Below, in pieces: positions 13,001 through 35,541 of a DNA stretch of 64,000 bases (position 1 is the first letter of the stretch; every line of letters starts with the position of its first letter). Source of the DNA: Mantamonas sphyraenae STR306 (lineage: Eukaryota; Protista; CRuMs); contig JAPMXV010000049.1 of NCBI GenBank assembly GCA_026936335.1, positions 434,001-498,000 on the forward strand. The letters are read 5' to 3'. Under the pieces are notes generated by a model. That model ran no database searches and was not told the DNA's origin. It worked only from the letters and a program-made list of their open reading frames with translations. Position numbers and translations under genes: made by a program.

Positions 13001-15468
13001 CACCAGGGTGCCGTTGCTGAGCAACACCACCACGGCGGAGCCCGGGCCGCTGCCGCTGGCCACACACCACTGGCTCACCGTGGCTGCGTTGGGACCCGTG
13101 GAGGGCAGGGTGAGTGCATCGGGCAGGGCGTCGCCCATGGTGCCGTTTTCGTGGCCCACGTCCACACTGCTGCTCTGTCCCAGCAGGTTGTTGTACGATT
13201 CGCCCCAGCACTTGATGCGACGGCCCGTGGTGGCACACCAGCCACCCGTGGGCTTGCCACTGGCCATGGACACCGTGGGCAGTGCCAGCAGACGCGTGGC
13301 ATGGAACCCCGTGCCCAGATCGATGTGAATCTGACGGTCTGCCGTCACGCGACGGTTGGTGATGTTGCCATACCCGGACGACATCTCATGGTTGTTGGTT
13401 TTCAGCACGGAAAAGTCGCCCAGGAGACGCACGGTGCCGTCGGCAAACACCACGCCGGTGTTGCCGTAGGGACGTCGGTTTTGGGTGTCGATAAACACCA
13501 GGTTGGCAGAGACGACAACGTCCACGGGCACCTTGCCCGGTCCAAAGTCCAACACGGGATTCTTGTTGCCCATCTGGAAGGGCTTGGTGCCACGGGACAG
13601 CGGCTGGTTGGCAGGCACGCCCAGCTGGCCGGCGTCGTTGGCACCCCAGCACTTGACGCGGTTGCCCGCCGTGGACGAGGTGTCGTACGAGACCAGCGCA
13701 CACGTGTGCACGTTGGTGTTGGACACCTTGAGCACCTCGTAGTTGCCCGTGTCGATGGCACACAATTGGTCGCCCATGCCCAGGCCGCCCTCGCCTGCAT
13801 CCTGCGCAAAGGGGCCCATCACACCGTTGTTGGCACCCCAACACTTGATTTGATCGTCGTCCAGCAGGGCACAGGTGTGACCCACACCGAGCACCACGTC
13901 CACCACAGTGCGGTTCTGGCCCAGGTCGATCACGGGCAGGTTGCTGCCCATGTGCGCCGGCGACACACCCAACACCTCCCCCACGGGGAAGTTCACGCCG
14001 AGCTCGCCGGCCTCATTGAAGCCCCAGCACGACAGGGTGCCGTCGGTAAACACCACACACGTGCGCAGTGTCTCGGAGCTCATGCGCAGCACCCGTGCGG
14101 GCTTGGGCAGATCCACGCGCGAGGCGTTCATAAAGATCTGCGGCGAGCCGTGCACGTAGCCCAGACCCAGCTGGCCCAATTCGTTGCTGCCCCACGTCCA
14201 CACACTGCCGTCGTCCAGCAGCACGGCGGCATACGGACCGGGTGACTCCTTGATGCCCGAGGGGATGGGAAAGCCAAACTGCGGATCGATGGTGGTCGTC
14301 TCTCGCGACGTCAGCGTGGGCGAGTAGCCGTCGGCACACGCAATGGAGGACAGCGTGCGACCGGCAGGCAGACCCGTCACCAGGAACTCGCCCTTGGTGA
14401 TGGAGCCAAACGAGTACGACAGGTAGTAGTTGTTGTTGATCAGGTCAAAGTTCACCCAGCACAACACGGACCCGTTGTTCTTCAACTCGCCACACATCAT
14501 GTTGCGCGAGCGGCACACGTTGTCCGTAAAGTACTGGTTCGAGTCGCGCGACGTCTTCAGGTTGTTGCCCATTTCGTTCGGCTGATCGCCCACGTACGAC
14601 GGCCCAAACCCACCGCCAGGGTACCACGGTCCCACCGCCGCCTGGGAGCCCCATCCCACAAGCGTGCCGTCGGTATAAAGCATGCCCATGGTACGTCCTC
14701 CACACACCATCTTCTTCGGGGTCGCTGGCGCAAGCGAAGGCAGCTCCAGCCACGGCGTTTGCCACGCCGTGCACGGTCCCGTCGTACATTGGAGTCCATC
14801 AAAGATGTTTGTCGGGTTGTTCGACGCCCAGCCTGTGCCTTGGAGGCCCCAGCAGCGCACGCGGTTCTCTGTGGTCAGAGCACACGCCGCCTCTTCTTTG
14901 ATGCAGAAATCCTTGATCTTGGTCTGGTTGCCCGTGCCATCGTCGCCCAGGTCAAGCGGCAGCGTGTTGGAACCCCACGTGTCACTGCTCAGACCCTGTG
15001 GCTGGACGGAGCCCACACCGTGCTTGGCATACGTGTTCCTATGCAGTGTCACGGCGCCGCCGAAATGAAAAAAACGGAGGATTGCACAAACGCGTCAGAG
15101 AACTGGTCGACCGTTGCAGAAAACGGGAACCTTTCCCGCTCCTCTATCTTCACTGTTCCGTGGCACTTACGTTCCCAAGCAGCGCAGTTGGTCGTTGCGC
15201 ATATAGCAAAAGTCCTCTCCGCCGCCCCACATGTTTTGGATGGGGCCAGCTATGCGCGTTCGTGCGGTATTGCGGTTTTGCGCGTGTGAGCAAAGATTGT
15301 TTGGCGCCCAAGGCAAAACATGCGCAGCCTCGGCGACGTTTGCACGCCATGCACCCACCGCATGGACACATTCATACGCATGCATGGCGCCCTCTTATCA
15401 TCATGCTTACCGTTCACCTGTGACACAGCCACGCAAATTGCAAGTAGCACGTAGACACGGATTGTCAT
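10037..15468 (-). CDS. Large cell-surface protein: signal peptide, RCC1/BLIP-II-like repeats, Cys-rich GCC2/GCC3 (ephrin-receptor-like) repeats, multi-TM C-terminus; exons 15468-15411, 15249-15171, 15038-10037
   Basis: Exon 1 encodes MTIRVYVLLAICVAVSQVN (signal peptide). Repeated HTCALL..IKCWGAN..GQLG motifs, then CxxCxxGTF repeats and about 8 hydrophobic segments including FGFLYAGYEPKAWYYE. Splicing restores an RCC1 repeat (LRCLGTNTYAKHG). Confidence 0.85.
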
Positions 15469-15544
15469 CAAAATTGCTTTTGTTGTTTTGGAGTGCGCGG
15501 TTGTTGGCTCTCACTGCACGCATCAGGAAGGAGACCATCACACA

Positions 15545-18217: not shown

Positions 18218-18270
18218 CCTGACACGTCGATTTGCTCCAACCGGCGCAAAGCATCCACACGGGCTTCCGC

Positions 18271-21200
18271 ATGTCCTCCCACGGCCCCAAGCTACTCACC
18301 TTTCAGGTGCAATCCCGCCTGGTGGCTGGTGTGCCTCTGGTGGATTCGGCCAATGGCCAACCCCTGGAGCTCACCGATGTCTTGCAGGCCCTCGACACCA
18401 AAACACGCAACCCGCCCAAGCGCCTCACAGGCATCATGACACACGACAACTACTACATATCTCCGTCATACAACACAGCAGAGGTCCAAGAGACCCTCGA
18501 CAAGCACCGTTCCCATGGGTTGGCCTTGCAAACTCTCGATGGTGTGTTGGTGTGCCCTCCCACCACCCCCCATCCCCATCCACCACCCCGCCGTTTGTGT
18601 CTCCTGTCCCGGTCTGACCCGTTTACGTGTGTGTTCTTGTCTCCCATCGAAACTCCATTGCCTGTCTCCTCCACCGCAGATGAGGACTATGAGGAGCGCA
18701 GAGACAAGGTGTTGGCCGATCTGGGCCAGCTGGAGTTGCCAAGGCAACTTGGCCCCACCCGTTCCTACAAACCGCCCCTGCGCGTCGACCAGGTCCACCC
18801 AGACATCTTTTTCATGTTCTCCGGCCCACTGGTCATGCGCAAGGACAAGCGTTCCCTCAAGGGTATCGCAGCGTTGGAGCTGCTTCTGGAATACGAGAAC
18901 CTTGTGGCAGGCTTGCGCGACACTCGTGGGTTGACCGGCATCCACATCCTTTTTGTTTCCATACGACACACTCTTAACCCCCCCCCCTTCACACACACAC
19001 ACACAGAGTCGCCGGTGTCCATTGCACCATGCAACGCCACCCAACACAACCTGCTGAGCGTGCAGAACAGCGGCTGCAAGATTTTACACTACTCTGGCCA
19101 CGGCGAGAAAGGCACGCTGCTGTTTGAGGACGACAGTGGGCTTGCAGTCAAGTACAGCATCGATCAACTCAAACTGGACTGGCGGGCCAGCGTCAACGCG
19201 TCCATCCAGCTGGTGTTTGTGTCTGCGTGCTACTCGGGCATGGTTGGCGACGCCTTTGCCGAACTCAAGGTGCCCCACGTCATCTCAGCCGGCGACGAAC
19301 CCATCAGCGACGACATTGCACGCGTGTGGTCGGTCACCTTTTACTCGTTGTTGCTGGAGGGCCACACCGTGCGTGACAGCTTCGACCGTGCCACCGCACA
19401 CACCAAACACAGGATGCACGGCCTGTTGAACCGGTCGAAACTCATGAACGAGACTGCCCTCTCGCAGTTCCGTCTGCTGCCCGACGACTCACAAGACCCG
19501 TCTCTGCACGACGTGGCCCTGTTTGAACCGGGCTCCATCGGCGACACCCGCGTGCTTCTGTCCAACAACGACGAGAAGGAAATGCTGCCCTCGCTGCCAC
19601 GCGACATTGTGGGTTCCAACATGTCCAAGAATGTCTACGAATTCCTGGCCTTTCTCACCAACACCCGCTCGCGCAAGTCGCGTCTGTTGTGTCTCCACGG
19701 TCGTGCGGGCATCGGCAAGTCCTTGACCGCCCTGCGTCTGGCACACTACCTGGCTGAACGCAAGACGTCGTATCCCGGACGCATCCATTGGGTCAACCTG
19801 CGCTACTGCAACCCGGTGGCCAGCAACAACATCCTCGAACTCCACGGCTCCTTTGTCGAGCCCATTGCCTCCCAGCTGCTCCAGGACGCCGATCTCCTCT
19901 ACGGCGTCAATCTGCAGTTGCCCCCGTGGCCACAGGTCACTGTCGTCCAGGTGCTCAAGGCCATCCAGCTGATTCGCCAGGCCACGGGCAACAAGCTGCT
20001 CCTCTTTCTCGACGACTGCGATCAGATGCTCATCACCGTCACCGAAGACGGCCAGAAGCGCCTCGTCGACTATTCCTTTGTCGACTTTCTCAAGCGACTG
20101 CTCAAACACGTCAACATTGTCCTCACAGCACGCATCCCGGTCATCCAGCTCGACTCGGGCTGCAACAAGTGGCAGTTTGAAGTCAAAGGCCTTGACGAAC
20201 GCGAAGGCTCCACTCTGGCCATCAAAAGTACGTCTTTCGTGTTCCACACCCCACCCCACACACCCCACCTTCTTACTCCATGCCGACTACCTTTTACTCA
20301 CACACACACTCACACAATCACTTGCAGATCTGCGCACCATCGACATTGACTCGGACGAAGCGAAATCGCGCATCTCCAAGATCCTCAGGCGGCTGGGGCC
20401 CATCTCACGCAAGTCAATCGTATGGTCGCCTATGAGGCTGTTGCAAACGTGCAGCATGGTTTCGGACGAGGTGATGGCGGCAAGCGACAGCGAGTTTGAC
20501 GCGTGGCTAAAGTCGGCCGAGGCAGAGCTCGCACGTCTGCAAACGTTGCCCCCACCGGTCACGTCGCTGGACAACATTGCCAACGACGACACGCGTGAGT
20601 TTTGGGAACGTGTGGTGGGTCAGAACACAATGATTGGCTGGGACGACTTTTTCGACAACGTGTGCGAACAACGCAGCTATAGCAAGTGGCGCTCCTTGTT
20701 TCGCGATTGGAAGACAGACAACAGTGTTGTGGCCAACTATTTCCGCAACCTGCTGCTGGTGCGTGACAAAGAACACACGGACGCAGAACAGGAATCGTCG
20801 TCGAGCAGCGGCAGCAGCAGCAGCAGCAACGCCAGTGGTGGCGGCGGCGGCGGTGGTAAGGGTGTGGCAGAGGTGCAGGAACAGATCCAAGTGGGCCACT
20901 TTGATGTGCTCGTCAAGATGATGGGCGGGATCAATCGCACTGTGGCGTCCATCAAGTCCATGCTGAACGAACCCTGGTTTGTCGGGTACATGACCAGATC
21001 CCAGGGCATCAAGAAACTGCTCACGCTGCCCCTGGACTCGCCGGGCATTGTGGACATCTGGGCTGCGGATGGCGAAGGCAACGACAAGGCCTTTGTGCGA
21101 TTGGAGGGGTCGGATGAACCGCGCGCCATCCAGTACCTTCACAGACACTTTGTGCTGCGTATCAGCACCATGGACAGTCCCAACTATGGCACCTGCATGT

Positions 21201-21442
21201 TGTGTGTGCTGAACGATGACTATGGCTTTGACCACGTGGCTGTGGACGACGTGGAGGACTCCCGCGGCAACCCCATGGTCCAGTTTCGCACGGTGCATCT
21301 TTCCGACGGCGCACAGGACCCTTACGCACACCTCGGCATGCATGCCACTGTGGCCGATCTCATCGACGCCGCCCTGGACAAGAAGCTCATCGATGCCACG
21401 CACAGCAACAACTACGGCGCAAAGTCGAGTCTGCGCATGTGA
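18271..21442 (+). CDS. CHAT protease - STAND ATPase - EF-hand/SH2 protein, paralogue 1 (~950 aa); exons 18271-18541, 18680-18925, 19007-20227, 20328-21442
   Basis: CHAT motifs ILHYSGHG..LLFED (~19087) and LVFVSACYS (~19222). Walker A GRAGIGKS (~19699), Walker B LLLFLDDCD, sensor IVLTAR. Then REFWERVVG..GWDDF and SH2 PWFVGYMTR...FVLRIS. Three phase-1 GT-AG introns give a continuous frame. Confidence 0.85.
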
Positions 21443-21490
21443 CCTGGATCACCAACAACAACAACACACAACAAAATCGCGCCGTTTCCT

Positions 21491-23227
21491 TTAGTAATGA
21501 CGTCCGTACACATCGTTTCCATCGTCAACCATGCCCAGTGCTGCCGCCAAGGCCTTGTCGGCGTCGGAGGTGGCGGTGACGTTGATGGGCATATCCAACT
21601 TGTTGCCAGCCAGCAACACCAGACGTTGAGCCAGTTTGTTGCCAGCCTCGGTGTAGGCCTCGTCAAACGCCCACGTCAGCTCGGCAGCAGCGTCGCCCAC
21701 CACAGCGTGCACGGCACCCACAAGCTTGCCCTCCGCTGTCAGTCCCACAAAGGCCACCTGTTCGGAATTGTCTGCGTCCAGCACCTCGTCCAGGGACGAT
21801 GAGGCCAGAGAGAGGGTCTCCAGATGGGCTTTGTCGTCTGCGGTGGCCTGGTGCACCTCCAGCTGCGACTCATCGCTGTCAATCAGGTTCCAGGCCATGG
21901 GCGTACCGCGCTCCACGTCCCTGCTTGCCACACGGCCCAACACGTCCGGAAAGTGTTCGGTGTGCATGCCAAACGAAGGACGGATCGACTTGACGTTCTC
22001 CCGCGTAAAGGGCTCGCCTGCCTTGACGTCCTGCACCACAAACAGCGAGCGGCGGAACGCCTTGTTGCTCTTCTCCTTCTTGCCCGACCCGCCAAACGTC
22101 ACCTTGCCGATCGATTTTTCCACAATGCGCACGGTGTCCACCATCTCCTTGAACTCTTGCGGCTCCAGTGAGAACGAACTGTGTGGGACAGCAGTGTGGG
22201 GAGGTGGGGGGGTCAGTACACAGCGAACGAAAAACGGACCCTCTGGTTTCCGTCCGGCCACACACACACACAGACACACACACACCGACGCACACTCAAT
22301 CAGAATGCTGCGCGATGAGATAGCAAGCAAGCAAAACACAGTGGGCATGCGTAAAAAGGAAAGGCAGTGCGAGCTGGCGTCTCTCTCGTACCTGTCGGGG
22401 CCCGGGATGCTGCGGTCGAGGGTAAAGTGCTTCTCGACAATGCGAGCACCCATGGTGACAGCGGCGACAGGAACAGCCACGCCGAGGGTGTGGTCGCTGA
22501 GGCCCGGGGTGGTGTTGAACGTGTTGGCAATGGTGTTCATGGTGATGAGGTTGGCATCCTCAGGCTTGGCAGGGTAGGCAGAGGTGCACTTGAGCACACA
22601 CAGTTGTGTGTTTCCGGCCGCTCGCAACACACGCACGCTCTCGTCGATGTCCGCCAGCGTGGCCATGCCCGTGCTCATGATGATCGGTTTGCCCGTGCGT
22701 GCAATGCGTCGCAGCAGCTGGTGGTCCGTCGACTCGAAACTGGCCACCTTGTACACAGGAGGGTCGATTTCCTTCTCCAAAAAGTCCACCGCCTCCACCG
22801 CAAAGGGCGACGTGAACAGGTCGCAGCCCAGCGAGTTGGCCAGCTCCTTCAACGGCTTGTGCCACTCCCACGGCGTGTATGCCTCCTGGTACAGGTCGTA
22901 CAGCGTGCGTCCATCCCACAGGCCCGTGTTCTTCACCATGAAGTAGTCGTTGTCACAGTCGATGGTGATTGTTTCCGGAGACAGCGTCTGCAGCTTGATG
23001 GCATCTGCGCCAGCTTCCGCGGCTGCTCGTACAAGCTTCTCTGCCATTTCGTAGTCTTGGCCATGGTTGCACGACAGCTCTGCAATGAAGTACGTCGGAT
23101 GGTCGGGGCCCACTGCACGGTCGCCAATGTAGAACGGCGGGTACTTTCCAAAGCCCCCGTCTGCCTTTCCGGCATCACTGCTGCTGTTGTTGTCGTTGCT
23201 GGAAGTGGTTGTGTTTGCGTTGGACAT
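21491..23227 (-). CDS. pseI: Pseudaminic acid synthase-like NeuB-family enzyme with SAF domain and C-terminal GNAT-like extension; exons 23227-22392, 22178-21491 (alternative ATG at 23290)
   Basis: Motifs IAELSCNH, GADAIKLQT, LWDGRTLYDLYQEAYTPWEWH (PseI-like), KPIIMSTGMA, GLSDHTLG, EKHFTLDR and FRRSLF. Removing the 213 nt GTACGA...CAG intron restores PGPDSSFSLEP. Confidence 0.85.
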   Translation of the reverse strand: MSNANTTTSSNDNNSSSDAGKADGGFGKYPPFYIGDRAVGPDHPTYFIAELSCNHGQDYEMAEKLVRAAAEAGADAIKLQTLSPETITIDCDNDYFMVKNTGLWDGRTLYDLYQEAYTPWEWHKPLKELANSLGCDLFTSPFAVEAVDFLEKEIDPPVYKVASFESTDHQLLRRIARTGKPIIMSTGMATLADIDESVRVLRAAGNTQLCVLKCTSAYPAKPEDANLITMNTIANTFNTTPGLSDHTLGVAVPVAAVTMGARIVEKHFTLDRSIPGPDRYERDASSHCLSFLRMPTVFCLLAISSRSILIECASVCVCLCVCVAGRKPEGPFFVRCVLTPPPPHTAVPHSSFSLEPQEFKEMVDTVRIVEKSIGKVTFGGSGKKEKSNKAFRRSLFVVQDVKAGEPFTRENVKSIRPSFGMHTEHFPDVLGRVASRDVERGTPMAWNLIDSDESQLEVHQATADDKAHLETLSLASSSLDEVLDADNSEQVAFVGLTAEGKLVGAVHAVVGDAAAELTWAFDEAYTEAGNKLAQRLVLLAGNKLDMPINVTATSDADKALAAALGMVDDGNDVYGRHY

Positions 23228-23377
23228 CTTTGGTGGTGGGATGTGCGGTCCAAGTTTTGGGATGCTAGCACCAGCGCGAGCCAGCGCCATCCACTCATCA
23301 TCTCACTTCCATGTGCATTCATCCTTCCAACTTCCATTTTTCTGTACCCATTCATCCCTCCCAACACCATCCTCCCT

Positions 23378-25711
23378 TCAGAAATCCTCGGCTGCACGCA
23401 GGTCCTGGCGGAATTGCAACGTGATGTCCACGGTGGTGCGCAACACCTCCATGGTCAGACTGTCGCCTCCATCCTTGGCCAGGGCCAGACCCAGACGCAC
23501 CACGTTCTTGATTTGGCGGCCGTTGAGCTCGTGCTTGGCCAGTTCTGCGGTATCGATGGACTCCAGATCGATCATCGTCTGTTCGCTGTCCTCGCCCTGA
23601 TACTTCTCATAGGCACTCTGCAGCAGGTTCTTCCACACCTGCTCACGTGCACTCTCGTCCAGCACGCTGTACTTGAGGGCCACGGTGACGCGGGACTCAA
23701 AGGCAGGGTCAAAGTCTTTCACACGGTTCGTGGTCAGAAACAGGGTGCCGCTGTGGTACTCAATGAGCCTCAGCATGACAGAGACCATGGCGTTGCGCAG
23801 GATGTCACTGTTGCGCTTCTCCAGAAACGTGTCTGCCTCGTCAATCAGCACCAACGCCTCCCACTTGGAACACAGGTCCAGCAACTCACGCAGACGCGTC
23901 TCCACCTGTTCCGGGTCCACACCCAGGTCACCAATGCTCACGTAGTACAGCGGCTTGTGCAGCAGCTCCGCAATCGCCTCTGCCGTCAGCGTCTTGCCCA
24001 CGCCAGGTGGTCCGTGCAGCAGAAACACGTTGGCTGCAGACTTGCCCTGCAGGATGTCCGACCATGTGTCCTGTGTGTGCAGCACCAACGCACGGATCAG
24101 CCGCTTGCGTGCCTCGGGCAACACCAGCTGCTCAAACGCGCGGTCGTTGAACTCGATCTCAGAGATGCCCGACACCACCACGTGGCCCCATGACTTTGCG
24201 TTCAGCGAGTAGCCCACCACAGAAGGCCACGTTTGCCACAGCATGTCCTCCGGCACCGACTTGAACGCAGTCAGTCCCTCCGGCCCAAAGAAGCGTGATT
24301 CCTCGTCCTCCTCGTCCTCCTCTCCCTCCTCACCCCCGTCACTGCCTTTGGCATCGTTGGAGGACGAGGATGAGGAAGAAGACGACGACGACGACGACGA
24401 AGAGGTTGTGCCCACTGCAGTGCCCATCCCCACCGTGTACTTTTGGTCGCGAGTCCACTGTTGGAATCGGTTCATGGCCAGAGCGTACGCACGCGACGGT
24501 TCATCGCCCCAACGTGCACTGCTGTGACCAAAGTCATGTCCCGTCTCATCGTCGATGATCATGCGCCCTCCTGACGGCAGCAGGTCGTTGTTGCTGCGAT
24601 TCAGCACACTCTTTCCTCGCTGAGTGCGGTGGATAAAGAAGGATCCTCGGTCGTACTGCACAAAACGTGAGCCACCCACCGCGTACTGTGCATACAGGCG
24701 TCCACGTGCGGTCATCTGCTCCATGTCCGACTCGGAGACCGGGGTGTACGCAAGCTTGGGCAATTCTCGCTGCCCCACCCAGCCAGACATCACTTCCTCC
24801 GCTTCCACCACACAGAAAGCACGTCCCACGCCAGCCACAAACTCCAGAGACATGTGAAACGACAGCTGGATGCCAAAGAGCGACTTGTGCTGCTCGTAGT
24901 ACGAGCTCAGCACTCGGAAGCCACAGTATGCACCTGCAAGTCCACCCGCACGTGCCTTGACCAATGCCCCAGGCACATACAGCTCACTCAGATACTCAAA
25001 CTCCACCACGCCCATGGCCAGGTTCGCACGCGCCTCCATCAGCTGCTGGTGATTCTGGCGTTCCACCACACGGATCAGACGCAGCAAACCGGGACACATC
25101 ACGATGGTCTCGTCCGTGGCAATGCGATATCCAAACGAGTTGAGCAGTTCCAAGAAGCGTCGCTTCTCCACGGGCGACTGCAGCGGGCCGCTCGGTTCCG
25201 CGTCGCCCTCTGCACCATTCTCGTACATCACACGTGCGTTGTACCGCTTCATCATCAGGTAGAACGAACGGAACATGCCCAGCGACAGGTACAGATGCCG
25301 GAAGGGGATCTTGTTGGCCATGTTGTTCGTGGAGATGAACTTGCGGACCACCACCAGCAAGCTCACCTCCAGCACCTTGCCATCCTCCAACAGCGACACC
25401 GTTTTCGGCATCACAATGCGAGAGCCTGTGTGGTTGAATGTGATGCTTGTGGGTCGCGTGTCCTCCTCGTCCTGGCCCATGCCGTCGCTGGCCAGCGCAA
25501 AAGGAAGGTGTTCATCATCGACATCATTGCCTTCATCTTCCGCCTCCATCGCGTACAACTCCTCGCCCTGGCCCAGAGCACTCAGCATTTGTGCGTGGGA
25601 TGCAAGGATCTCCGTATGCATTTCTTCTTCCGTCATAGGTGGTGTCTCCTTGCTGCTGGAGCTCGCCGCTGCGGCGGCGGCTGCCTTTTTCTTCTTGCCA
25701 AAAAGTGACAT
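23378..25711 (-). CDS. AAA+ ATPase of the type expanded in filamentous fungi (DUF7025-like N-terminal region), ~777 aa
   Basis: Walker A LLHGPPGVGKTLTAEAIAE, Walker B LIDEADTFL, and LFLTTNRVKDFDPAFESR and LNGRQIKNVV. The upstream VVGYSLNAKSWG motif is typical of this family. Confidence 0.88.
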   Translation of the reverse strand: MSLFGKKKKAAAAAAASSSSKETPPMTEEEMHTEILASHAQMLSALGQGEELYAMEAEDEGNDVDDEHLPFALASDGMGQDEEDTRPTSITFNHTGSRIVMPKTVSLLEDGKVLEVSLLVVVRKFISTNNMANKIPFRHLYLSLGMFRSFYLMMKRYNARVMYENGAEGDAEPSGPLQSPVEKRRFLELLNSFGYRIATDETIVMCPGLLRLIRVVERQNHQQLMEARANLAMGVVEFEYLSELYVPGALVKARAGGLAGAYCGFRVLSSYYEQHKSLFGIQLSFHMSLEFVAGVGRAFCVVEAEEVMSGWVGQRELPKLAYTPVSESDMEQMTARGRLYAQYAVGGSRFVQYDRGSFFIHRTQRGKSVLNRSNNDLLPSGGRMIIDDETGHDFGHSSARWGDEPSRAYALAMNRFQQWTRDQKYTVGMGTAVGTTSSSSSSSSSSSSSSSNDAKGSDGGEEGEEDEEDEESRFFGPEGLTAFKSVPEDMLWQTWPSVVGYSLNAKSWGHVVVSGISEIEFNDRAFEQLVLPEARKRLIRALVLHTQDTWSDILQGKSAANVFLLHGPPGVGKTLTAEAIAELLHKPLYYVSIGDLGVDPEQVETRLRELLDLCSKWEALVLIDEADTFLEKRNSDILRNAMVSVMLRLIEYHSGTLFLTTNRVKDFDPAFESRVTVALKYSVLDESAREQVWKNLLQSAYEKYQGEDSEQTMIDLESIDTAELAKHELNGRQIKNVVRLGLALAKDGGDSLTMEVLRTTVDITLQFRQDLRAAEDF

Positions 25712-25736
25712 GGAAAATTTGCGTTCAGTTGCTTCC

Positions 25737-28714
25737 TCAGGCGCTGCCCCACACATCCACTTTTGTCACCGCCAGGTCTGGATTCAGAATGCCCATCTGC
25801 ACGCCCTGGTCGATGAGATCGCGCAGAGACGAGCCCTCGAGCTTGTGCTGGCCCAGCGACACCTGCCAAGAGTCCTTGAGCCGCACCACCGTGTTGTCTT
25901 GCGTAAACGATACCCCGTTGCCCTGTGCATACACCATGGCCTTGCTGTGGCGCACACTGATGCGCACCAAGAACGCACCATCCTCGAAAGGCCCGTGCTT
26001 CTGTGCGTATGCGCCGATCACCGCGTTGGTCGTCTCGTACCCGTGGTAGTACGGCTCCTTGGCCAGTGCCGTCAACTCGACAAAAAAGTCCCTGCTGTAC
26101 GGTGCCACAACTGCCAGAAGCATGGCACATGTCTTCTCCAACACCCTGAAATCGTTCTCGTCCCTGTTTTGGCCGGGGGGCAGACACACCATGGACCTGA
26201 GTGCCAACAGATCATCTTCGTCATCGCCAATGCGTGTGTACACGGGCGATCCGTTCAGATCCTGCACAAACAACTCCCACATCTGCTCCTTGCTGCGTGT
26301 GCCAAACGTCAACGCCCAATCCGTGTTGGCCCTCTCGTCGCCAAGGTCCACCGGATCCACCTCCTTGCTGTAGTGGATGATCTCTTCGAGTTCCTTCAGG
26401 TGGTGTGTAAACACCCCCTCCATGTCGATGTGCCTCCCCTGTGCCCATTCGCGCTTCAGCAACTCCATCAGCATGCCCAGACGCATGGCGTTGCCCGAGG
26501 TGATGTGCAACACCGCACCCGACGTCTCGTACACCTTGCCTGTGTACAGTGAATCCGCACCCAGGTGGTCCACCCACACCTCGTCCACATACCGCACCAC
26601 AGGCACGTGCACGTGGCTCACCTGACCCTCCATCCTGAACATGGGCTGCCCACGACAGGTGATCAGAGCATAAACATTGCCCTGTAGCAGTCTGGTCAGA
26701 TAATTCACGGTCTGCTGGTCTGCCCTGCTCCTGCCCGAGTGCGCCTTGAGCAGATTCTGCGCCCCATCCAACACCAGCAGGATCGACTTGCCACCCTGTG
26801 TTTGCTCACGCAGCAACGCCTCCACATCCACGCCTCCTGTGTGGCCCCCATCTACGCCCATCTGGGCACCCAAACACACAGCCAGGGCACGTTCAAACTC
26901 GGCCACCGTGCTGACTTGTTCCAGCGACACCCACACCACACCTCCGCCAAACACACGCCTGTCGTTGAGCATCTGCGCAATCACTGCCGCAAAGTGCGAC
27001 TTGCCACATCCTTCGCTGCCGTAGAGCACCATCAGCTTCTTGCTCTGTCTCCGCAGCATGGTCATGGTCAGCCGCAGTTTGACAAACCGGTGCACGTCGT
27101 ACACCGTCCTGTACGCACGCTTCTCCCCATGCCACTCCTTGGGCAGCACCAGCCTGTCTGGCATTCCCTTTTGACTCAGCTGCAGTCCCGATGATGACGC
27201 TGATGCCTCGGTCGACGAGGTCACGCTCTGCATCGTGGTCCCTGTGTGCACCTCCTCCTCACCCTCGGGCAACAGCACAAACAGCGTCGAGTCGACACTG
27301 CTCTCCACCAACGCTTGGTCAAATGCCTCCTGCACGTTGCTCCCATTGGCCAGTAGAGACCAGAAGCGTCCTGCAAACGCAAGGCTATCCTCCGTTGTGC
27401 ACTCGTCCTCCTTCACCTTGCACACCACGTGTGGCACCCCAACATTGAGCAGGTACTGTGCCGTGTCCCTGCAATTCTCCAACAGGTCCACAAACACCAC
27501 TTCCGGCTTGCTTTTCGACTCCTCCAGCCGTTCTGTGAACCCTTTCACGCCACTCTTGCTGCTCTTCCGCTCTGACGAGTACATCGATCCACTGAATTCG
27601 TCCTCATACATCAACACCTCGCCCGCATTGCGGTAGGATCGTCCGTACAGATGCACCATGTGTTTGCCAAAATGGCACAGCGAGGCGAGATTCAGAGGCG
27701 CCTGAGCGAACCGAGCAAGGGGGAGGGGTTGCGTCAGCGATGTGTGTGTGCGTGCGTGTGTGTGTGTGTGTGTGTGTGCACCTGTACGTCCTCCACACAC
27801 ACAATGGATGGACACACCCAGCTACCTGCTCCTAGGAGTGTGCAGGGGAAACTCACCATTTTCAGCTCGGTCGGCGACACGACGGTGTCATGGAGCTGAG
27901 CGGCCAGGCGACGGTAGACTGAGTCAACATCCAGGGGCTGGAGGGGCAGACCCAGTTTCCGTGGCCAACCGTCGCCCCCGGATGTGGAGGAGAGGCTGGT
28001 GGGAAGTGGGAGGTCGTCGTTGAGGGCAGAGGGAACGTCGACCAAGCTTGCGCTGCTGCTGCCGTTGCTGCTTGTGGCCCACTCGTGCGCACGGAAGGAT
28101 CGTACGTCCTTGCCAGGCATAAAATTCAACACCTCCTGCTGGTACTCTGGATCCACGTCGCCAAACGTGTCCATGTCGATGTCCAGGGGCGAACAGTGCA
28201 GGAAAGACAAGGTCAGCTGTGCATCCAGCGAGCCTTTGGACGCAGACGACTCGCTCGTCTCCTGCTGCAGCAACGACGACGACAACGAACTGGACAGCGA
28301 CGTGGTCCCATCCAACGATGCACGTGACTTTGCAGCCAGTGCCACCTTGGCCACCAGAGGCTCGTCGCCCAGAGTGGCCACTTTGCCTTGCGTCCAGGGT
28401 GTGTTTGTGTCTCTCGCAGACGAGGAGGAGGAGGAGGAAGGCAAAGACGACACGGAGGATGAGCTCAGGGCAAGGTCAAACACCGTCACGGTTTGGTCAC
28501 TGGGCAGTTGCAGACGTTCCCCAAGCACACGTGCGAGTTCCTGCTTGATCTCCTCGGGCCCGTCGCTTCCACGCAGCCCAGCCAGCAGATACTGATTGAA
28601 ATGTGCATCGGCAATGTTGCTCACCTGCACGCGCACACTGTACAGCGCTTCACCGCCAGCCAGCGAAGACGACGACGATGACGAAGACGATGAGTGCAGC
28701 GGACCAAACTGCAT
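25737..28714 (-). CDS. CHAT(pseudo) - STAND ATPase - EF-hand/SH2 protein, paralogue 2 (~940 aa); exons 28714-27857, 27701-25737
   Basis: CHAT-fold motifs (SFLHCSPL, LMYEDE, GVPHVV, VQEAFDQA) are present but the catalytic segments read HLYGRS and VFVDLLENC. Walker A GSEGCGKS, Walker B ILLVLDGAQ, sensor ALITCR, SH2 PYYHGY...GAFLVRIS. One phase-0 GTGAGT...CAG intron. Confidence 0.8.
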
Positions 28715-28755
28715 CCGGCGGTTGTTTTGCTTTTTCTGTGTCGGCGCCACCGCGG

Positions 28756-28787
<32 letters not shown>

Positions 28788-28812
28788 AACCTTTCCCTGA
28801 GCCACATGCACG

Positions 28813-31800
28813 CTATCGCATCCCAGCCAATCGCATGGCTGCCCGTTTTGCTGCCACTCGCAATCCCACGCTGCCAACTTCGCTCCGCAAAAACCCTGCT
28901 GCTGCTGCCACCACCTGGTTGCTGTCCAACGCACCCGACACAAGCAACTGCTCGTTCTCTCTCAGGATATCCCTCACCACGCCTAAAGCCTCGTTGCGTG
29001 TCATCACGTCCACCTCCTTCACCACCACATCCGCAAACTTGCTGCTGCTTCCTGTGCTGGACATCTCATCGCTTGCCAGGCGCCGGAAGAACTCACTCAA
29101 ACGGTACGCATTGCCAACGACAAAGGATTCCAGGTGCGACTTGCACAGTTTGTCCTTGCGCAGGTGTGCAGGCAGATCGGTGGGGTTGCCTGTGCCCAAC
29201 GCAGACAGCACCTGTGCCACCAGCGTCAGGTTGTGCTCCGCCGCTTCCACCCTCTCCTGTGCCAGGTCGTCCGGAGGGCCCAGGTTCCACTTGTGGGGCT
29301 CCGTGAGAACGTGGACGACGAGCGAGGACATGACCAGGCGAGACAGGCTTGCACGCACCATTTTGCTGGACACCCCAAAGCGCACGACGATGACATTGGC
29401 CAGGGTGCGACACAATGCACACACCATTTCGGGCATGGAGTCACGTGCATCCAACAGCGCCTGCACGAGCACAAGTACGCCCTTTGCCAGCAGTTGTTTC
29501 ACGTTGCTCTTCTGCTTGCTTGCCTTCAGGCCATCCTCAGCCGTCACCAGCCATTTGCCCTTGCGACCCCACAGTGTGCCGATGTACGAACCCAGGGCCC
29601 CATGCACCCATCCACGCACTTCGGCGTCGTTGACAAACACACACCCGGCCATGCGGTACCCCAGCGTGCACGATTGCTGTCGTTCTCCTCCACAATGTCC
29701 TGCGTGAGTTGAGCCACCGCCCCACTCAATGCTCGCTCCCTGCTGTGTCGGAAACAGATGGAAAACAAAGCCTGCGCCACGCGCGGGCCCTGATCCTCCG
29801 TCACCGCCAGCTGGCACATGGTCACCATACGTGCTTCCATCACCCAGCGTTCCAGCACCGCGTCGTCGTCCAGCCACTGGGCAAACAGAGCGTAGCGTTC
29901 CTCAGGTCCACCCGCAGACAGCAGCTCAGTCACAAGTGCCGATTCACTCGACGTCGGTGGCACCAACGCGACGCAACCGTGTCGCAAATCACATCCAACG
30001 ACACCGTGCCCTGTCGCACCAGGCGACGTAGCAACCCACGCACCTGTTTGTAAAACGTGAGCGCGTCTGCGTGAAGATACGTGTCGAGTGCCATGGCTGC
30101 ATCGTCTGCCTCCTCCAGCACCAATGCCTGCACCATGCGACGTGGCAACACGCCTCCCGGGTACGTGCTGCACAGATCCGTCAGCGTGTCACACAGCAGA
30201 TCGATGGGCATTGCCTCCAGCTTTGTCCCACTTCCACCAATCCCTGTACCACTGCTTCTGTTGCCAATACTGCTACTGCTACTGCTGCTGCTGCTGCTGT
30301 GGTCCTCGCCACCCATCAAAGCACGCACAACACCAATCTTGGCCTCCACGCTGAACGAACCCGAAAACAGGTCCAGGTTGCGACTTCCATGCCGTGCCAC
30401 TCCATACTCGATTGCACTCACCAACGGACCCACAATGTCCAGTCGAGCCTGTGTGTTGAGTTGAATGTACGGCACCAGCACGTGCAACTCCTCCTCCCCT
30501 TCCTCCTCCTCCTCCTCCTCCCCTGTCCCTTGCTTCTTCCGTGTCTGAACATCATCCGCTCCCTCGTGTCCTTGCATGACCCCTGCGCCGTCGTCGGCAT
30601 CACCAACCACGACCTGCTGCCCTGCAACCTTGCCGTTCTCCTTTCCAGCACCTCCTCCACTCCCACTGCGCGGCGTCGTTGGCATGGCCACCTGCACCAA
30701 CGACATGCTTGTCCTCTGTTTCCCATGCAACAGAGATCCCGAACTGTGTTTGTGCTTGCTCAGCGACGCAGGTCGCTTCTTCTTTGGCAGCACAAAATGC
30801 TCGGCTGCCTCCGCTTCCTCCTCTTCCCCGTCCTCCTCCTCTCCCTCTCCCTCTCCCTCTCCCTCCTCTTCGCCTCTCCTCCCATCTCCTACCTCTGTCT
30901 CCTGGCCTTCTCTTGCCTCCAGATCCATCACCGAACGCGGGACAGCAATCCCCACATCGTCACGCACCATGGCCACACCCGCTCCTGCCCGCTCCCCTGC
31001 CTCTTGTCCGTTGCCGCCGTTGCCATCATCCGCACCAAATCCAACTGATCCTGAGACATGGATGCTCGGCCGTTGGCAGTGGATGCTTGTTCCATCCATG
31101 CACGCAGACGTGCCTGCAGCTCCCTGGGTCCCGCTCCACCCACACGTGTCCCTCCCACACCCCCCAGTCCCATCACTGTGTCCTTCTCTGGTTCGTCCGC
31201 CAGACGCATTTGGTCCTTGTGGAACTGCTGCGCCAGTGGGTTCTGGTCAACCAGCGCTGCCCACGCCTGGATCTGTTCCCGTTTCGACGCAGACACCCCT
31301 TCCATCCATGCCTCGATGTCCCCCTCCTGACCCTTGCTCAGTTCCTTCATACCACCCCTCTGTTCTCCTTGCTTGGCCCGTGCCGCGCGTGCCTGTGCCC
31401 GGCGCTGCACCGCTCTCCGTCGTTCCGCCGCCTTCTCCTCCTCCTTTGCCGCCGCCGCCTTGGCCATTGCCTCTGCAGACTGAACGCCCCACCGCGTCCT
31501 CTCTGCCTCTTCGCGTGCCTCGATGTTCCGTCGTGCCGTTTCCACTCGCTGTCTGCTCGTCTCCTGCACCCGTGCCGTCGCCGTGTCACCCACCGCCTCG
31601 CTTGGCGCCATCTTTCGTTTCAAGCTCTGCAACCGCACACGCGTCCGCTCCTCCGTCTGTCCACGCTCATCCCCACTTCGCCTCACGCTTGCCATTCCAT
31701 TGGCCACCATCCCTTGCCGTCCACTCTCCTCTGTGTTCCCTCTCCTCTCTCTCTCTCGGCGGTCAATTCTGTGTAGCTCGGCCCCCGCTCCTGCTCCTTT

Positions 31801-32045
31801 TCCTCCCCTGTGCGCTCTGTGTCCCGTCTTGGTCCGTACAATCGCTCTCGTTCCCTTTGCTCCTGTTTCTTCTCCAGTTCCTTGCGCCGTGTGGCCAGCC
31901 GCAGACGCCCTTGATCCATCTCAGCCCACACGCTCTCCAGTTCCCGCTCCTGCGCCGCAAACACCTTGCGCACGCGTGCAAGGTCCTTCGTACGCCGTGA
32001 CCTGGCCCCACGTCGACTCCGTCCTCCACCTGTTGTGCTCGACAT
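28813..32045 (-). CDS. Coiled-coil + degenerate RhoGAP-like + degenerate RasGAP-like protein; about 4 apparent frameshifts (~31750, ~31035, ~29974, ~29680)
   Basis: Five overlapping ORF pieces join with single-base shifts. RhoGAP-like segments AIEYGVARHG..LDLFSGS and DLLCDTLTDLCSTYPGGVLP. RasGAP-like segments MPEMVCALCRTL, VLTEPHKWNL, HNLTLVAQVLSAL and LESFVVGNAYRLSEFF. Confidence 0.6.
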
Positions 32046-32109
32046 TATCCTCCTGATCAACAAACAGCTTGCCTGCTCCTGCGCCCCCCGCACCATCCCC
32101 GTCTCGCCC

Positions 32110-35100
32110 ATGGTCAAGATCAAGGTCAATGTGGACGACCAGTGCGTCATGGTCCTGGCCAAGAAGAACCTCACTGTCGATGACATCCTTGCCAAGGTGG
32201 TGAAAACCTACAAGCAAAAGAGTGGCAACGACATTGAGCTCTCCGCCCTCGAGTGCGACGGCTCCATCCTCGACGGCGACTACACCGTCGAGGACCTCAT
32301 GGACGAGGACCTCATCCAAGAGGACAATCCCTTTGTGGCCGTCAGTACGTTTGGCGTTTCCACTTACCCGTCTCGCCTTCCCACCACACACTACCCGGGC
32401 GTCCATCTGCGCGCCGCAAGGTTTTTTCATCCATCCCGTCTCGATCGGGGAGCCCGCTCACACACACACGCGCACACTCGTCACAGTCAAACAGGGCAGC
32501 CCGCTGCCTCAGGAGAACCACTCGGTTGCCTCTTCGTCGTCGATGGCCAACAGCACATCCGCACCGGGCTCTCCAGCGCCCTCCACAGACGGCGGTCTCT
32601 CAGCGTGGGTTTTCCCCTCTTCCCGACGCCGCTCGCCGCCTTTCCCACCCTCGCTCACGCCTTGCCACGCTTGCCCATCCCCTTGTACTGTCTCCCATAC
32701 CAATCCTCGTACACGGGCCAATCTCCTTCCACCCCTCTCCGCAATGCACCCGCCCATGACCATCCACAGCGAGGGCTCCGAAGAATTCATCGTCTCCAGC
32801 TTCAGCACCTCGGCCGAGGACGAGTACCCGTCCTCGGGCTCTCGCCATGGTTCCTCCTCAGACTTTGGCGTCTCATCCTCCTCCTCCCTCAGCGAGTTTC
32901 CGTCGCGTCAGGGCCTGATGGACCGAATCCACGGCCTCAAGAGCACGGGCACCTCGGCCCGCGTGAAAAACATTGATCTCGGCTTCCTCTTCTCTTCGCC
33001 CCTGGTGTACACAGAAAGCTCGTCCTCCGAGCTCAAGGAGCTCCAGCTCCTCAATCTCCGCCAAGAGAACAAGATGCTCCTCAACGTGCTGGCCGAAGCT
33101 GGCGTCGGCGTCGTTGCCAAGCAGGAGAATGCCACCATCAACAACTTCCGCTTCCTCATCAACGACGGCTGCCGCGCTTTTCATTATTCCGGCCACGGCA
33201 TGCTCAACTCCCTCACATGTGCGTTCTCCACACCTGGGCTCCTCCCCGTTCCCCTCACCACATGCACACGCACACACACACATACACGCACACACGCGCG
33301 TACATACCGCCCAAGAGCGTTTTTTTTGGGGCCTAACGCAACTGCCGCATTGGCCGCGTTTGTTCTCGTCCCTACCCCGGCCCCTTGCTGCATGGCCTTT
33401 TGATGATCCACACAACCTCCCATTCTCTCACCTCAGCTCACACACATCACGACGCACACACGCCGCACCCTGGAACCTCCACCTCCAACCACAAAACAAC
33501 CCCGCGCACAGTTGAGGACCAGGTTGGACGAACGCACGACCTGGACGTCGACGACCTCAAGGTGCTCTTTTCCGCCGGCGGCACCAACTCGGTCACGTTT
33601 GTGTTTGTGTCCGCGTGCTACTCTTTCAACGCAGGCAAGACGTTTGTAGAGGCCGGTGTGCCCCATGTGGTGGCGGTCAAGCAGCAAAAGATCCTCGACT
33701 TTGTCTGCCGTGAGTTTGCCAAGCAGTTCTACTACAACCTTGTGACGGGCAAAACCGTGCAGCAGTCCTTCGACATTGCAAAGTCGTACATCAAGGCCCA
33801 GAAGCCAGACGTGCACCTTAAGGATCCCCACGCGGCCGCCGAGCTCTTTGTCCTCTTGCCCGAGGACGGCGACCACGACATTGCCATCTTCCCCGACCTG
33901 GACGAGGACGACACGCTGGAAGAGGTGGATCCGGTCAACACAACGGGCCTCCCACCCTACCCCAACATCTTTTACGGCCGCGGCGTCGCCCTCCACAACC
34001 TCATCAACCTCATGCACAAGGAGCAAACCAACCTCGTCACCGTGTCGGGCGAGTACGGCGTGGGCAAGAGCACCCTCGTCAACGCCATGGTCCACTACCT
34101 CAACGACAGGCGACGCTTCGAACGCGTGTTTTGGGTCGATGTAAAGGGCAAGCGCAACCTGGCTCAGTGCGTCACAACCATTGCACAGCGCATGGGTCTC
34201 AGTGGCTCCGAGCCAGAGGACATCAAGAAGTACCTTTTGGAAAACACGGGCCAGGACACGTCCGACAAAACCGTCCTCCTGGTCCTCGACGGCTTCGACT
34301 CGCTGCTGAAGAAGGTCACCGCAAAGGTGGACGACCTGGAAGAGGCCAGTGCAGGCGGCGCCGGCAGCAGCAGCAGCAACAGCAACAGCGGCGACGACGT
34401 GGACATCCTGGAGAATCCCGAAGCGGACCTTAGTCTCGACGACACCAGCGGCAGCAACGGAAGCGCAAAGGGCAAGCAACGTGAAATCACAACGTATACA
34501 GACGACGGCGTGTTGGACTTTGTGGGCTCGTTGCTGGACACCATCGAGAACCTCAAGGTGGTCATCACCCTGCGCGACAACATCGGCAAGCCCGTGGGCT
34601 CGCATGTGGCAGACAACTTTGAGGTGCCCGCCCTGACCCCGTATGCCTCGGCACAGGTGTTCCAGAAAATGGCGGCCCACCTGAGTTTGGACGAGCTCAA
34701 GCTGGAGCTGCAGAAGCACCGCTTCCCGCCCGGATCGCGCGTCAATGCCTTTATGCTGCTGTCGCTGCATCCTGTCATCCAGCTGCTGGCAGGCAACCCG
34801 CGACGCATCACACTGGCCGTGGCCAAGTTCAACGAAAAGGCAAATCGCTCGTTGCGGGAGCTGTACCAAATCTGCGAGAGCGACCTCCACGACGAGCTGT
34901 TTCGCGAGGGCGACGAGGTCGTGCAGAAGAAGGAGATTGCCATCGCCGACCCCGAGGGCAAGGAGGCTTGGGCGGATCTGTTTGGCCACAAGTTTGAGGT
35001 GGTCTGGTATGTGTTTATGCAGCAGATCATCAACAACTTTAACATCACGGCACAGAATCTGAAACTGATCAAGGGCCTTATTATTGACAAGAGCACAAAG

Positions 35101-35541
35101 AGTGGAGAGGAACGCGTGACGCAGGCCAGCTTCAACGTCTTTCTGAAGCTGTTTGGGCCCTATTCGGAGTCGTTCCAGACGGCGGTGAGCGTGCAGCAGC
35201 AGACCTGGTTCCACGGCGTCCTCACACGAGCCGACGTCATGAACAAGCTGCGCAACGACAGCGTGGGCACCTTTCTCATCCGCCTGAGCAACAACCATCC
35301 GGGGTACTACATTGCCAGCTACGTGGGCGACGAGAACGGACGCAAGGTCCTGCAGCAGATCATTGTGCAGAACAGCTACGAAAAGACGGGCCAGGTCGGA
35401 TACACGGTTCCCCAGAAGAACGAGTCGTTCAGCTCCCTCAGCGACTTTGTCCAACATTACCGATCCATCGGTGTGTTTTCCCAGGGCCACTCCTCCTTCT
35501 ACTCCTTCAGCGCCAGTCTCGATGGCGACGACGCGCTCTGA
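32110..35541 (+). CDS. CHAT protease - STAND ATPase - EF-hand/SH2 protein, paralogue 3 (~943 aa); exons 32110-32344, 32487-32604, 32770-33218, 33512-35541
   Basis: N-terminal ubiquitin-like segment. Splicing joins FHYSGHGMLNSLT to FEDQVG, followed by FVFVSACYS (~33610). Walker A GEYGVGKS (~34048), Walker B VLLVLDGFD, VVITLR, LAGNP. Then IADPEGKEAWADLFG..VVW..F...FNVFLKLFGP and SH2 WFHGVLTR...GTFLIRLS. Confidence 0.88.

Follow-up and report, generated by a model that had tools for sequence, protein, structure and literature searches.

Can a single polypeptide read phosphotyrosine (pTyr) and answer it with proteolysis? This question is raised by three genes of Mantamonas sphyraenae STR306 (GCA_026936335.1), a deep-branching protist (CRuMs). 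They lie in a 64,000-nt window of contig JAPMXV010000049.1, the whole stretch analysed, to which all coordinates refer (position 1 is its first letter). The original prediction assigned them near-equal lengths and a common domain order, namely CHAT protease, STAND-type NTPase and EF-hand plus SH2. The GT-AG spliced models, which exhibit zero internal stops, correspond to proteins of exactly 950, 940 and 943 aa. Copy 1 (950 aa; 18271..21442, + strand; exons 18271-18541, 18680-18925, 19007-20227, 20328-21442) is composed of a CHAT domain with an intact catalytic dyad, an NTPase, an EF-hand, a divergent SH2 with an insert of about 35 aa, and a tail tyrosine. Copy 2 (940 aa; 25737..28714, - strand; exons 28714-27857, 27701-25737) exhibits a pseudo-CHAT, an NTPase, an EF-hand and an SH2, and no tail tyrosine. 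Copy 3 (943 aa; 32110..35541, + strand; exons 32110-32344, 32487-32604, 32770-33218, 33512-35541) follows the layout of copy 1 with an uninterrupted SH2. GC3 is of coding type in the exons (0.71-0.86) as against 0.50-0.64 in the introns, which are C-rich. Spliced models were assembled for frame and length; profile searches were run per exon, with an M. plastica protein serving as full-length stand-in.

This M. plastica protein (EP00003_P029258) is the best match of copy 3 (68% identity), and its transcript carries CHAT, STAND and SH2 within a single ORF. The same combination is found in one ORF in intronless genes elsewhere. In copies 2 and 3 the same exon holds both CHAT and SH2. The reading of CHAT and SH2 as separate genes was rejected in view of this exon sharing, with which the transcript evidence is in accord. 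The predicted domain order was borne out by profiles and predicted folds, which support a CHAT domain, a STAND-type NTPase and a Cbl/STAT-type EF-hand plus SH2.

The CHAT domain is recognized by Pfam in copy 1 (E-value = 8e-6) and copy 3 (E-value = 0.004, half exon), and an independent family HMM scores 125, 43 and 129 bits for copies 1, 2 and 3, respectively. The protease domain of the predicted M. plastica structure best matches SAVED-CHAT (PDB 8tl0; Z = 21.0, rmsd 2.8, 194 aligned residues). The catalytic residues are present in copy 1 (His 19099-19101, Cys 19228-19230, + strand) and copy 3 (His 33194-33196, Cys 33616-33618, + strand). As predicted, the two residues of copy 3 are on different exons: both the gene model (intron 33219-33511) and the M. 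plastica transcript, which runs uninterrupted through the corresponding exon junction, confirm this. The intron is in phase 1 and also occurs in the paralogues on contigs C51 and C73. The expectation of CHAT motifs in all three genes holds for copies 1 and 3 but not for copy 2, where arginine (27641-27639, - strand) stands at the histidine position and leucine (27482-27480, - strand) at the cysteine position. Across 40 homologues, His and Cys are each found in 37. A protease function is thus conceivable for copies 1 and 3 only.

At the other end of the proteins, Pfam identifies both an SH2 domain (E-value = 2e-11; 35206-35460, Arg 35281-35283) and a Cbl_N2 EF-hand (E-value = 3e-6; 34942-35178) in copy 3 (+ strand). 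It gives no SH2 match for copies 1 and 2, the SH2 of the former being interrupted by the insert and that of the latter highly divergent. Their assignment required family profiles and fold comparison: 27 bits for copy 1 and 38 bits for copy 2 (best shuffles 3 and 9), ESM matches of copy 1 that are SH2 without exception, and a predicted structure of copy 2 resembling Dictyostelium STATa (1uus, Z = 11.7). The family profile also matches STATa (1uur, E-value = 8e-18) and Cbl. The betaB motif reads FVLRIS in copy 1 (21149..21166, + strand; Arg 21158-21160) and FLVRIS in copy 2 (25956..25973, - strand; Arg 25964-25962). Arg betaB5 of the pTyr pocket is present in all three copies, as originally predicted, and so is Ser betaB7. 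Among 40 homologues the pocket is conserved at Arg betaB5 (40/40), Ser betaB7 (37/40) and Arg/Lys alphaA2 (37/40). From these residues, we predict that the SH2 domains of the trio are pTyr readers. The closest fold to the EF-SH2 unit of the M. plastica model is the substrate-binding module of Cbl (6xar residues 177-345, Z = 16.9).

A tyrosine is located 13 residues before the end of copy 3, in a C-terminal tail (35488..35541, + strand), and is a candidate STAT-like phosphosite. Such a tail tyrosine is present in all five dyad-intact Mantamonas paralogues, copies 1 and 3 included, so that a STAT-like reciprocal dimerisation is possible. Outside Mantamonas it is found in 8 of 37 members; a universal STAT-like tail is therefore not upheld. 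SAR members terminate in a STAT-like LYP-x-x-PK-x-x-AF motif.

How might a pTyr signal reach the protease? Between the two lies an ATPase detected by Pfam as NB-ARC in copy 3 (E-value = 1e-9), AAA_16/NACHT in copy 1 and NACHT in copy 2 (E-value = 2e-7). Of the STAND hallmarks originally listed, Walker A (copy 1, GRAGIGKS, 19699..19722, + strand; copy 2, GSEGCGKS, intact, 26997..27020, - strand), the hhhhD Walker B and the sensor-1 hhhT-x-R were identified in all three copies, but the exact G-N-P in copy 3 alone; the GxP motif is GNA in copy 2 and has no clear match in copy 1. The Walker A lysine is kept in 39 of 40 homologues, and the glycine and proline of GxP in 37 and 39 of them, respectively. 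The sensor-1 arginine is present in 10/40 only. The nucleotide-binding domain (NBD) and helical (GxP) domain of copy 3 (33970..34900, + strand) are not followed by a winged helix. The spacing from GxP to the EF-hand is 46-55 aa in five members (55 aa to the first EF-hand Trp in copy 3). A winged-helix profile that recovers 16 held-out long-tail sisters and the gene on contig C5 (E-value = 2e-16) matched none of 51 SH2-type proteins. C-terminal repeats (LRR/TPR/WD40/ANK) are likewise absent from the trio, with EF-hand and SH2 in their stead. The same protist subfamily includes TPR-type sister proteins with a winged helix, one being the C5 gene, and the SH2 occupies the position of their TPRs. 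The idea that an SH2 replaces the repeat sensor is thus correct as to position, but the winged helix (and arm) is displaced too.

The winged-helix (and arm) domain is the ADP-state lock of canonical STAND/NLR proteins. Because their ATPase is devoid of it, the three proteins are not canonical NLRs, contrary to the initial description as NLR-like, and an NLR-style sequence of sensor release and ring formation should not be taken for granted. According to such NLR logic, the SH2 would be an autoinhibitory sensor, and a pTyr ligand would trigger ADP/ATP exchange, ring formation and CHAT activation for defence or death. We consider this unlikely. The position of the SH2 agrees with it, as does the resemblance of the NBD and helical fold of the M. 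plastica model to ZAR1 (Z = 16.6) and Apaf-1 (Z = 14.5, alignment limited to residues 108-354); the EF-hand could also substitute for the winged helix, and fungal CHAT-NLRs cleave gasdermins (PMC10197012). However, no SH2-type member exhibits a winged helix, the sensor-1 arginine is infrequent, and the relatives checked in other protists occur singly amid housekeeping genes, whereas immune receptors are typically expanded. The lack of a winged helix in the 51 proteins is better matched by activation through clustering than by release of a sensor.

Another possibility is that the SH2 serves only for localisation or substrate choice, as in a Cbl-like adaptor with a protease in place of RING, activation being triggered by a different signal that acts via the ATPase or N-terminal segment. 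This would be consistent with the Cbl-like EF-SH2 fold, and with the existence of many relatives having the same core without any SH2. The N-termini of the family also vary freely (Ubl-like, CLU-like or none). Of the ubiquitin-like segment proposed for all three genes, weak, sub-threshold traces appear in copy 3 only (DUF2604, E-value = 0.003; Par3_HAL_N_term, E-value = 0.009), whose predicted exon 1 (32110..32344, + strand) may encode a ubiquitin-like/PB1-type domain and is related to exon 1 of the C51 paralogue. Copies 1 and 2 gave no profile match to a ubiquitin-like domain, and no kinship is detectable among the three N-termini. The tail tyrosine kept in the five dyad-intact paralogues argues against a purely localising role. 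The catalytic dyad and SH2 arginine are near-invariant in homologues and conserved together across supergroups, which fits a coupling of the two, though it is compatible with targeting as well. Overall, we regard an SH2 confined to targeting as improbable.

The trio represents three of about nine family paralogues in the genome (five dyad-intact, four dyad-dead), among which the C13 gene is intronless. Identity among the copies is 25-30% and their introns differ, in agreement with the high divergence originally noted. Copies 1 and 3 have their nearest relatives on other contigs, and the three copies are not mutual sisters in a quick tree with SH-aLRT support only, in which copies 1 and 2 sit on long branches (2.1 and 3.0 changes per site). 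A recent tandem triplication is ruled out by these identities, sisters and introns. Three of nine genes within 14 kb is above chance (P about 1e-4, post hoc). Since clustering was not observed among the relatives examined and the trio are not mutual sisters, it adds little in itself, and the view of an old and maintained cluster is not sustained. The long branches, the degenerate SH2 domains of copies 1 and 2, the lack of a detected M. plastica counterpart of copy 2 and the unrelated genes between the copies could instead suggest that copies 1 and 2 are duplicates that drift fast and are nearing loss, that an old local duplication left the cluster behind, and that the conserved family function rests with copy 3 alone. 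We find this very unlikely, as both copies keep intact frames of 940-950 aa with coding-type codon bias and retain Walker A/B and the SH2 arginine despite their divergence; a like pattern is seen in three further dyad-dead paralogues. Such drift may be partly true alongside a signalling role by clustering.

About 49 relatives were found outside Mantamonas, the named ones being from stramenopiles (oomycetes included) and Rhizaria. In other protists the same CHAT-NTPase core is joined to FHA, another phospho-reader. An assignment to a known bacterial defence family was rejected, PADLOC giving weak P-loop or CHAT matches only. The layout was presumed to be without characterised precedent, and we found no published description of it in the literature open to search, mostly papers accessible without subscription.

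The M. sphyraenae genome contains 13 SH2 matches, about four classical PTPs and many kinases with HRDLKxxN. The canonical tyrosine kinase signature HRDLAARN was not found in it, so the pTyr writer is assumed. In Dictyostelium STATc signalling, tyrosine phosphorylation is carried out by TKLs (PMC4196871). No candidate substrate gene was found near the trio, no conserved partner gene was identified, and the genome gave no match to gasdermin in Pfam, which is insensitive to divergent gasdermins. A death function thus has no direct support.

Taken together, the trio would belong, as diverged members, to an expansion of about nine genes specific to Mantamonas. The old protist family that expanded combines a CHAT protease with a STAND ATPase reduced to NBD and helical domain and with a STAT/Cbl-type EF-hand-SH2. 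With moderate confidence, we favour a model in which SH2 docking on pTyr clusters the proteins and proximity activates the protease. The pTyr would be written by a TKL kinase, either on a receptor or scaffold or, in Mantamonas, on the C-terminal tail of the protein itself. The SH2 would bind it through its conserved pocket, and the ATP-loaded NBDs, whose motifs are present, would stabilise the resulting assembly; we know of no tested precedent for oligomerisation without a winged helix. Proximity would then pair the caspase-fold CHAT domains of copies such as 1 and 3, as in caspases and the SAVED-CHAT filament, for His-Cys proteolysis of a substrate. Copy 2, which keeps the ATPase and SH2 motifs without dyad or tail tyrosine, may be a non-catalytic partner or a brake, in the manner of cFLIP towards caspase-8. 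The output could be defence, death or ordinary limited-proteolysis signalling. A more specific version is a STAT with a protease output: TKL phosphorylation of the tail tyrosine would lead to a reciprocal SH2-pTyr dimer that activates the caspase-family domain via the winged-helix-less ATPase, and paralogues that, like copy 2, have neither the tail nor an intact dyad would be one-way dominant-negative partners. This version is possible, though doubtful. If true, pTyr signalling would be coupled directly to caspase-like proteolysis, possibly serving death or defence, in a lineage situated close to the Amorphea base, with relatives in SAR.

The layout persists, its key residues intact, in CRuMs, stramenopiles (oomycetes included) and Rhizaria, and offers a definable and testable function for the SH2 domains of protists that have no canonical tyrosine kinases. 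A further question raised by it is how a STAND-derived switch works without a winged helix. The set of intact and dead paralogues provides built-in controls, and the oomycete copy a knock-out target in a tractable organism.

Compared with known systems, the trio resembles fungal and bacterial CHAT-NLRs (gasdermin-cleaving CHAT-NACHT/NB-ARC-TPR proteins) and bacterial Avs/NLR-related proteins in having an N-terminal CHAT with a His-Cys dyad ahead of a STAND-type NBD and a GxP helical domain. It differs from them in lacking winged helix, arm, repeat sensor and any linked gasdermin found, and in having EF-hand and SH2. SAVED-CHAT, a type III CRISPR-linked protease whose structure comes closest to that of the protease domain, becomes active when its ligand drives it into filaments (8tl0, entitled "activated SAVED-CHAT filament"); here the reader is an SH2 rather than SAVED, which binds cyclic oligonucleotides, and the reader is separated from the protease by an ATPase. 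Dictyostelium STATa/c and metazoan STATs share the C-terminal EF-hand/linker and SH2, and the tyrosine just after the SH2 of dyad-intact Mantamonas members may be a further likeness. In contrast to STATs, neither Pfam nor fold comparison reveals a coiled coil or DNA-binding domain, CHAT and NTPase fill the N-terminal part, the output would be proteolysis, and most SAR members have no tail tyrosine. The EF-hand-SH2 unit is that of the Cbl tyrosine-kinase-binding module and Dictyostelium SHK kinases, but is fused to a protease and an ATPase instead of a RING or kinase domain. By analogy only, active and catalytically dead paralogues side by side recall caspase-8/cFLIP and paired plant NLRs. Animals keep pTyr signalling apart from their caspase activation platforms, and adaptors connect the two machines. 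Here, reader, ATPase and protease are predicted to reside in one polypeptide, a layout that may let tyrosine phosphorylation directly switch on a protease.

The three neighbouring genes with the domain order CHAT, STAND-type NTPase and EF-hand plus SH2 were modelled with GT-AG introns as copy 1 (18271-21442, plus strand, 950 aa), copy 2 (28714-25737, minus strand, 940 aa) and copy 3 (32110-35541, plus strand, 943 aa). These lengths agree with the near-equal sizes stated in the original prediction. None of the models contains an internal stop, and third-position GC is of the coding type in the exons of all three copies, not in their introns. The window introns (e.g. 18926-19006 and 33219-33511) are C-rich, with CA repeats ahead of the acceptor. 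Two introns of copy 1 are stop-free and in frame, so that an unspliced reading would yield an inserted yet open protein. Searching the databases exon by exon, we found the best relative to be a Mantamonas plastica protein derived from a transcript. The catalytic His and Cys (the dyad) of the copy 3 CHAT domain do lie on separate exons, as had been proposed. The intron dividing them is doubly supported, since the M. plastica transcript crosses it and, in the paralogues on contigs C51 and C73, the same codon is interrupted by a phase-1 intron. The joining of exons 1 and 2 to the rest of copy 3 is putative because the M. plastica protein begins in the linker; the remaining junctions of the three copies are based on splice signals, composition and alignment.

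Profile searches identified SH2 (2e-11), NB-ARC (1e-9), Cbl_N2 (3e-6) and CHAT in copy 3, CHAT and NACHT/AAA_16 in copy 1, and NACHT in copy 2. With profiles made exclusively from non-Mantamonas relatives, every copy showed both CHAT and the NTPase. Copies 1 and 2 have divergent SH2 domains, which score 27 and 38 bits against a profile of the paralogues (best shuffles 3 and 9, respectively). The top ESM matches of copy 1 are SH2 without exception, and a predicted structure of copy 2, built on the family alignment and thus not fully independent, matches Dictyostelium STATa with Z 11.7. The predicted fold of the M. plastica protein (pLDDT 78) matches SAVED-CHAT (Z 21.0), Cbl EF+SH2 (Z 16.9), ZAR1 (Z 16.6) and Apaf-1 (Z 14.5). 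The proposed CHAT, NTPase and SH2 domains are thus supported by both profiles and predicted folds. The ubiquitin-like N-terminus fared less well: copy 3 exhibits a weak, sub-threshold match, and its segment is related to the first exon of the C51 paralogue (z 3.6). Neither copy 1 nor copy 2 has an N-terminus related to that of copy 3. The C51 gene (L030:1949-2938 in an excerpt of C51, minus strand) also carries an insert of about 70 aa in its EF-hand region, SAM-like by eye and with no Pfam match at E 0.001.

The SH2-type proteins carry a STAND ATPase in truncated form. A profile of the winged helix, built from TPR-bearing sister proteins, recovers 16 held-out long-tail proteins and a Mantamonas gene on contig C5 (E 2e-16), and matches none of the 51 SH2-type proteins. 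The spacing from GxP to EF-hand is 46-55 residues in five Mantamonas members, and the M. plastica model aligns with Apaf-1 residues 108-354 only. In Apaf-1 and plant NLRs it is the winged helix that retains ADP and keeps the protein closed. The SH2-type proteins are therefore NLR-like in look yet fail a defining feature, and they represent a CHAT-STAND signalling variant, not true NLRs. Release in the manner of canonical NLRs is unlikely with this element absent, and for the same reason the trigger mechanism probably differs from theirs. Many sisters ending just past GxP, some short ones of which may be fragments, bear LRR, FHA, SAM, UBA, kinase or receiver domains up front. The CHAT-NTPase core follows an N-terminal FHA, a phosphothreonine reader, in P0007 of Albugo laibachii and three more proteins; further CHAT-NTPase proteins carry LRR, SAM, UBA, kinase, receiver or cNMP-binding domains, and the family member P0101 exhibits two SH2 stretches behind the NTPase.

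Among the best matches, about 49 non-Mantamonas proteins combine CHAT, NTPase and SH2. Named carriers are Globisporangium (an oomycete), Paraphysomonas, Triparma, Partenskyella and Nonionella, most of the others being metagenome proteins; the architecture is thus present across distant supergroups. Key residues are conserved in the homologues (His 37/40, Cys 37/40, Walker A Lys 39/40, SH2 Arg 40/40). We found no description of the CHAT+STAND+SH2 architecture in the literature searched, and UniRef names the relatives merely "SH2 domain-containing protein". The architecture is real and apparently undescribed, consistent with the earlier view that no characterised protein was known to have it.

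Across 25,061,354 bases in 78 contigs of M. sphyraenae, the clade comprises nine genes: three in the window on C49, one each on C13, C51, C73 and C3, and two on C1. A quick tree groups them together (SH-aLRT 97), with two non-SH2 proteins also inside; copy 1 falls with C13 (SH-aLRT 86) and copy 3 beside the M. plastica protein, and the branch of copy 2 is very long. As predicted, the cluster copies have no intron positions in common, an intron of copy 3 being shared with C51 and C73 rather than with its neighbours. The copies are separated by unrelated genes, all on the minus strand: an intron-split NeuB/PseI-type sialic or pseudaminic acid synthase with a SAF domain directly downstream of copy 1 (21491-23227, NeuB E 5e-78), a fungal-type AAA+ ATPase (AAA, AAA_lid_13, DUF7025; 23378-25708) starting about 30 bases past the stop of copy 2, and a RasGAP-like ORF (28813-29877, E 0.002) that stops some 100 bases before copy 2 begins. 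Farther along, a pair of inositol 5-phosphatase-type ORFs (49725-53844, minus; 55820-57775, plus), one of which has PH and C2, lies near a myotubularin. A chance grouping of three of the nine genes within 14 kb is unlikely (P about 1e-4, calculated post hoc). The closest kin of copies 1 and 3 are off-cluster, and the three relatives examined on long contigs of other protists are single and intronless, with housekeeping neighbours. Most plausibly, the cluster is what remains of an old local duplication.

The dyad is intact in five of the nine paralogues. Copies 1 and 3 keep it, but in copy 2 His is replaced by Arg and Cys by Leu; by its sequence, copy 2 is a predicted pseudoprotease. Its Walker A, Walker B and sensor-1 motifs and its SH2 Arg remain. 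That copies 1 and 2 are decaying, to which their divergent SH2 domains might point, appears improbable. The other dyad-less genes are the C3 paralogue (L032:1736-7261, plus strand; CLU-like/helical front half, Walker A and SH2 intact) and the head-to-head C1 pair (about 14000-19800; L035:3018-5387, minus, and L035:7193-8839, plus), the SH2 part of the plus-strand gene not being found in the DNA stretch examined.

We give an even chance to clustering and activation driven by phosphotyrosine. The SH2 domain, whose pocket residues are present, would bind phosphotyrosine, the proteins would cluster, and CHAT domains with an intact dyad would be activated by proximity, with copy 2 as a possible partner. 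An SH2 acting solely as a targeting module is unlikely. STAT-like dimerisation through the tail takes half of the weight placed on phosphotyrosine-driven clustering. A tyrosine just past SH2, 9-16 residues short of the C-terminus, occurs in all five dyad-intact paralogues, the M. plastica protein and one dead C1 gene, and is absent from copy 2 and C3. Outside Mantamonas it occurs in 8 of 37 proteins, 27 of the 37 ending within 12 residues of SH2, so that dimerisation through the tail would at best be confined to Mantamonas.

Any role of the trio in death or defence would be an analogy borrowed from the CHAT systems of fungi and bacteria (PMC10197012); gasdermin gave no Pfam match in the M. sphyraenae genome. 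That genome contains 13 SH2 matches, five of them in the present family, about four classical PTP genes and 77 HRDLKxxN kinase motifs, several of TKL type, and no HRDLAARN. On C42 (396985-398181, plus strand) a single 1354-aa frame encodes an SH2 with a kinase domain immediately after it, which makes it a candidate writer of SHK-like type. Tandem, near-identical large kinases (1200-1600 aa) with catalytic-loop codons in common are found on C25 (109680-175215) and C2 (385909-398028). Dictyostelium is also without orthodox tyrosine kinases, and its TKLs Pyk2 and Pyk3 recruit STATc via its SH2 domain and phosphorylate it (PMC4196871).
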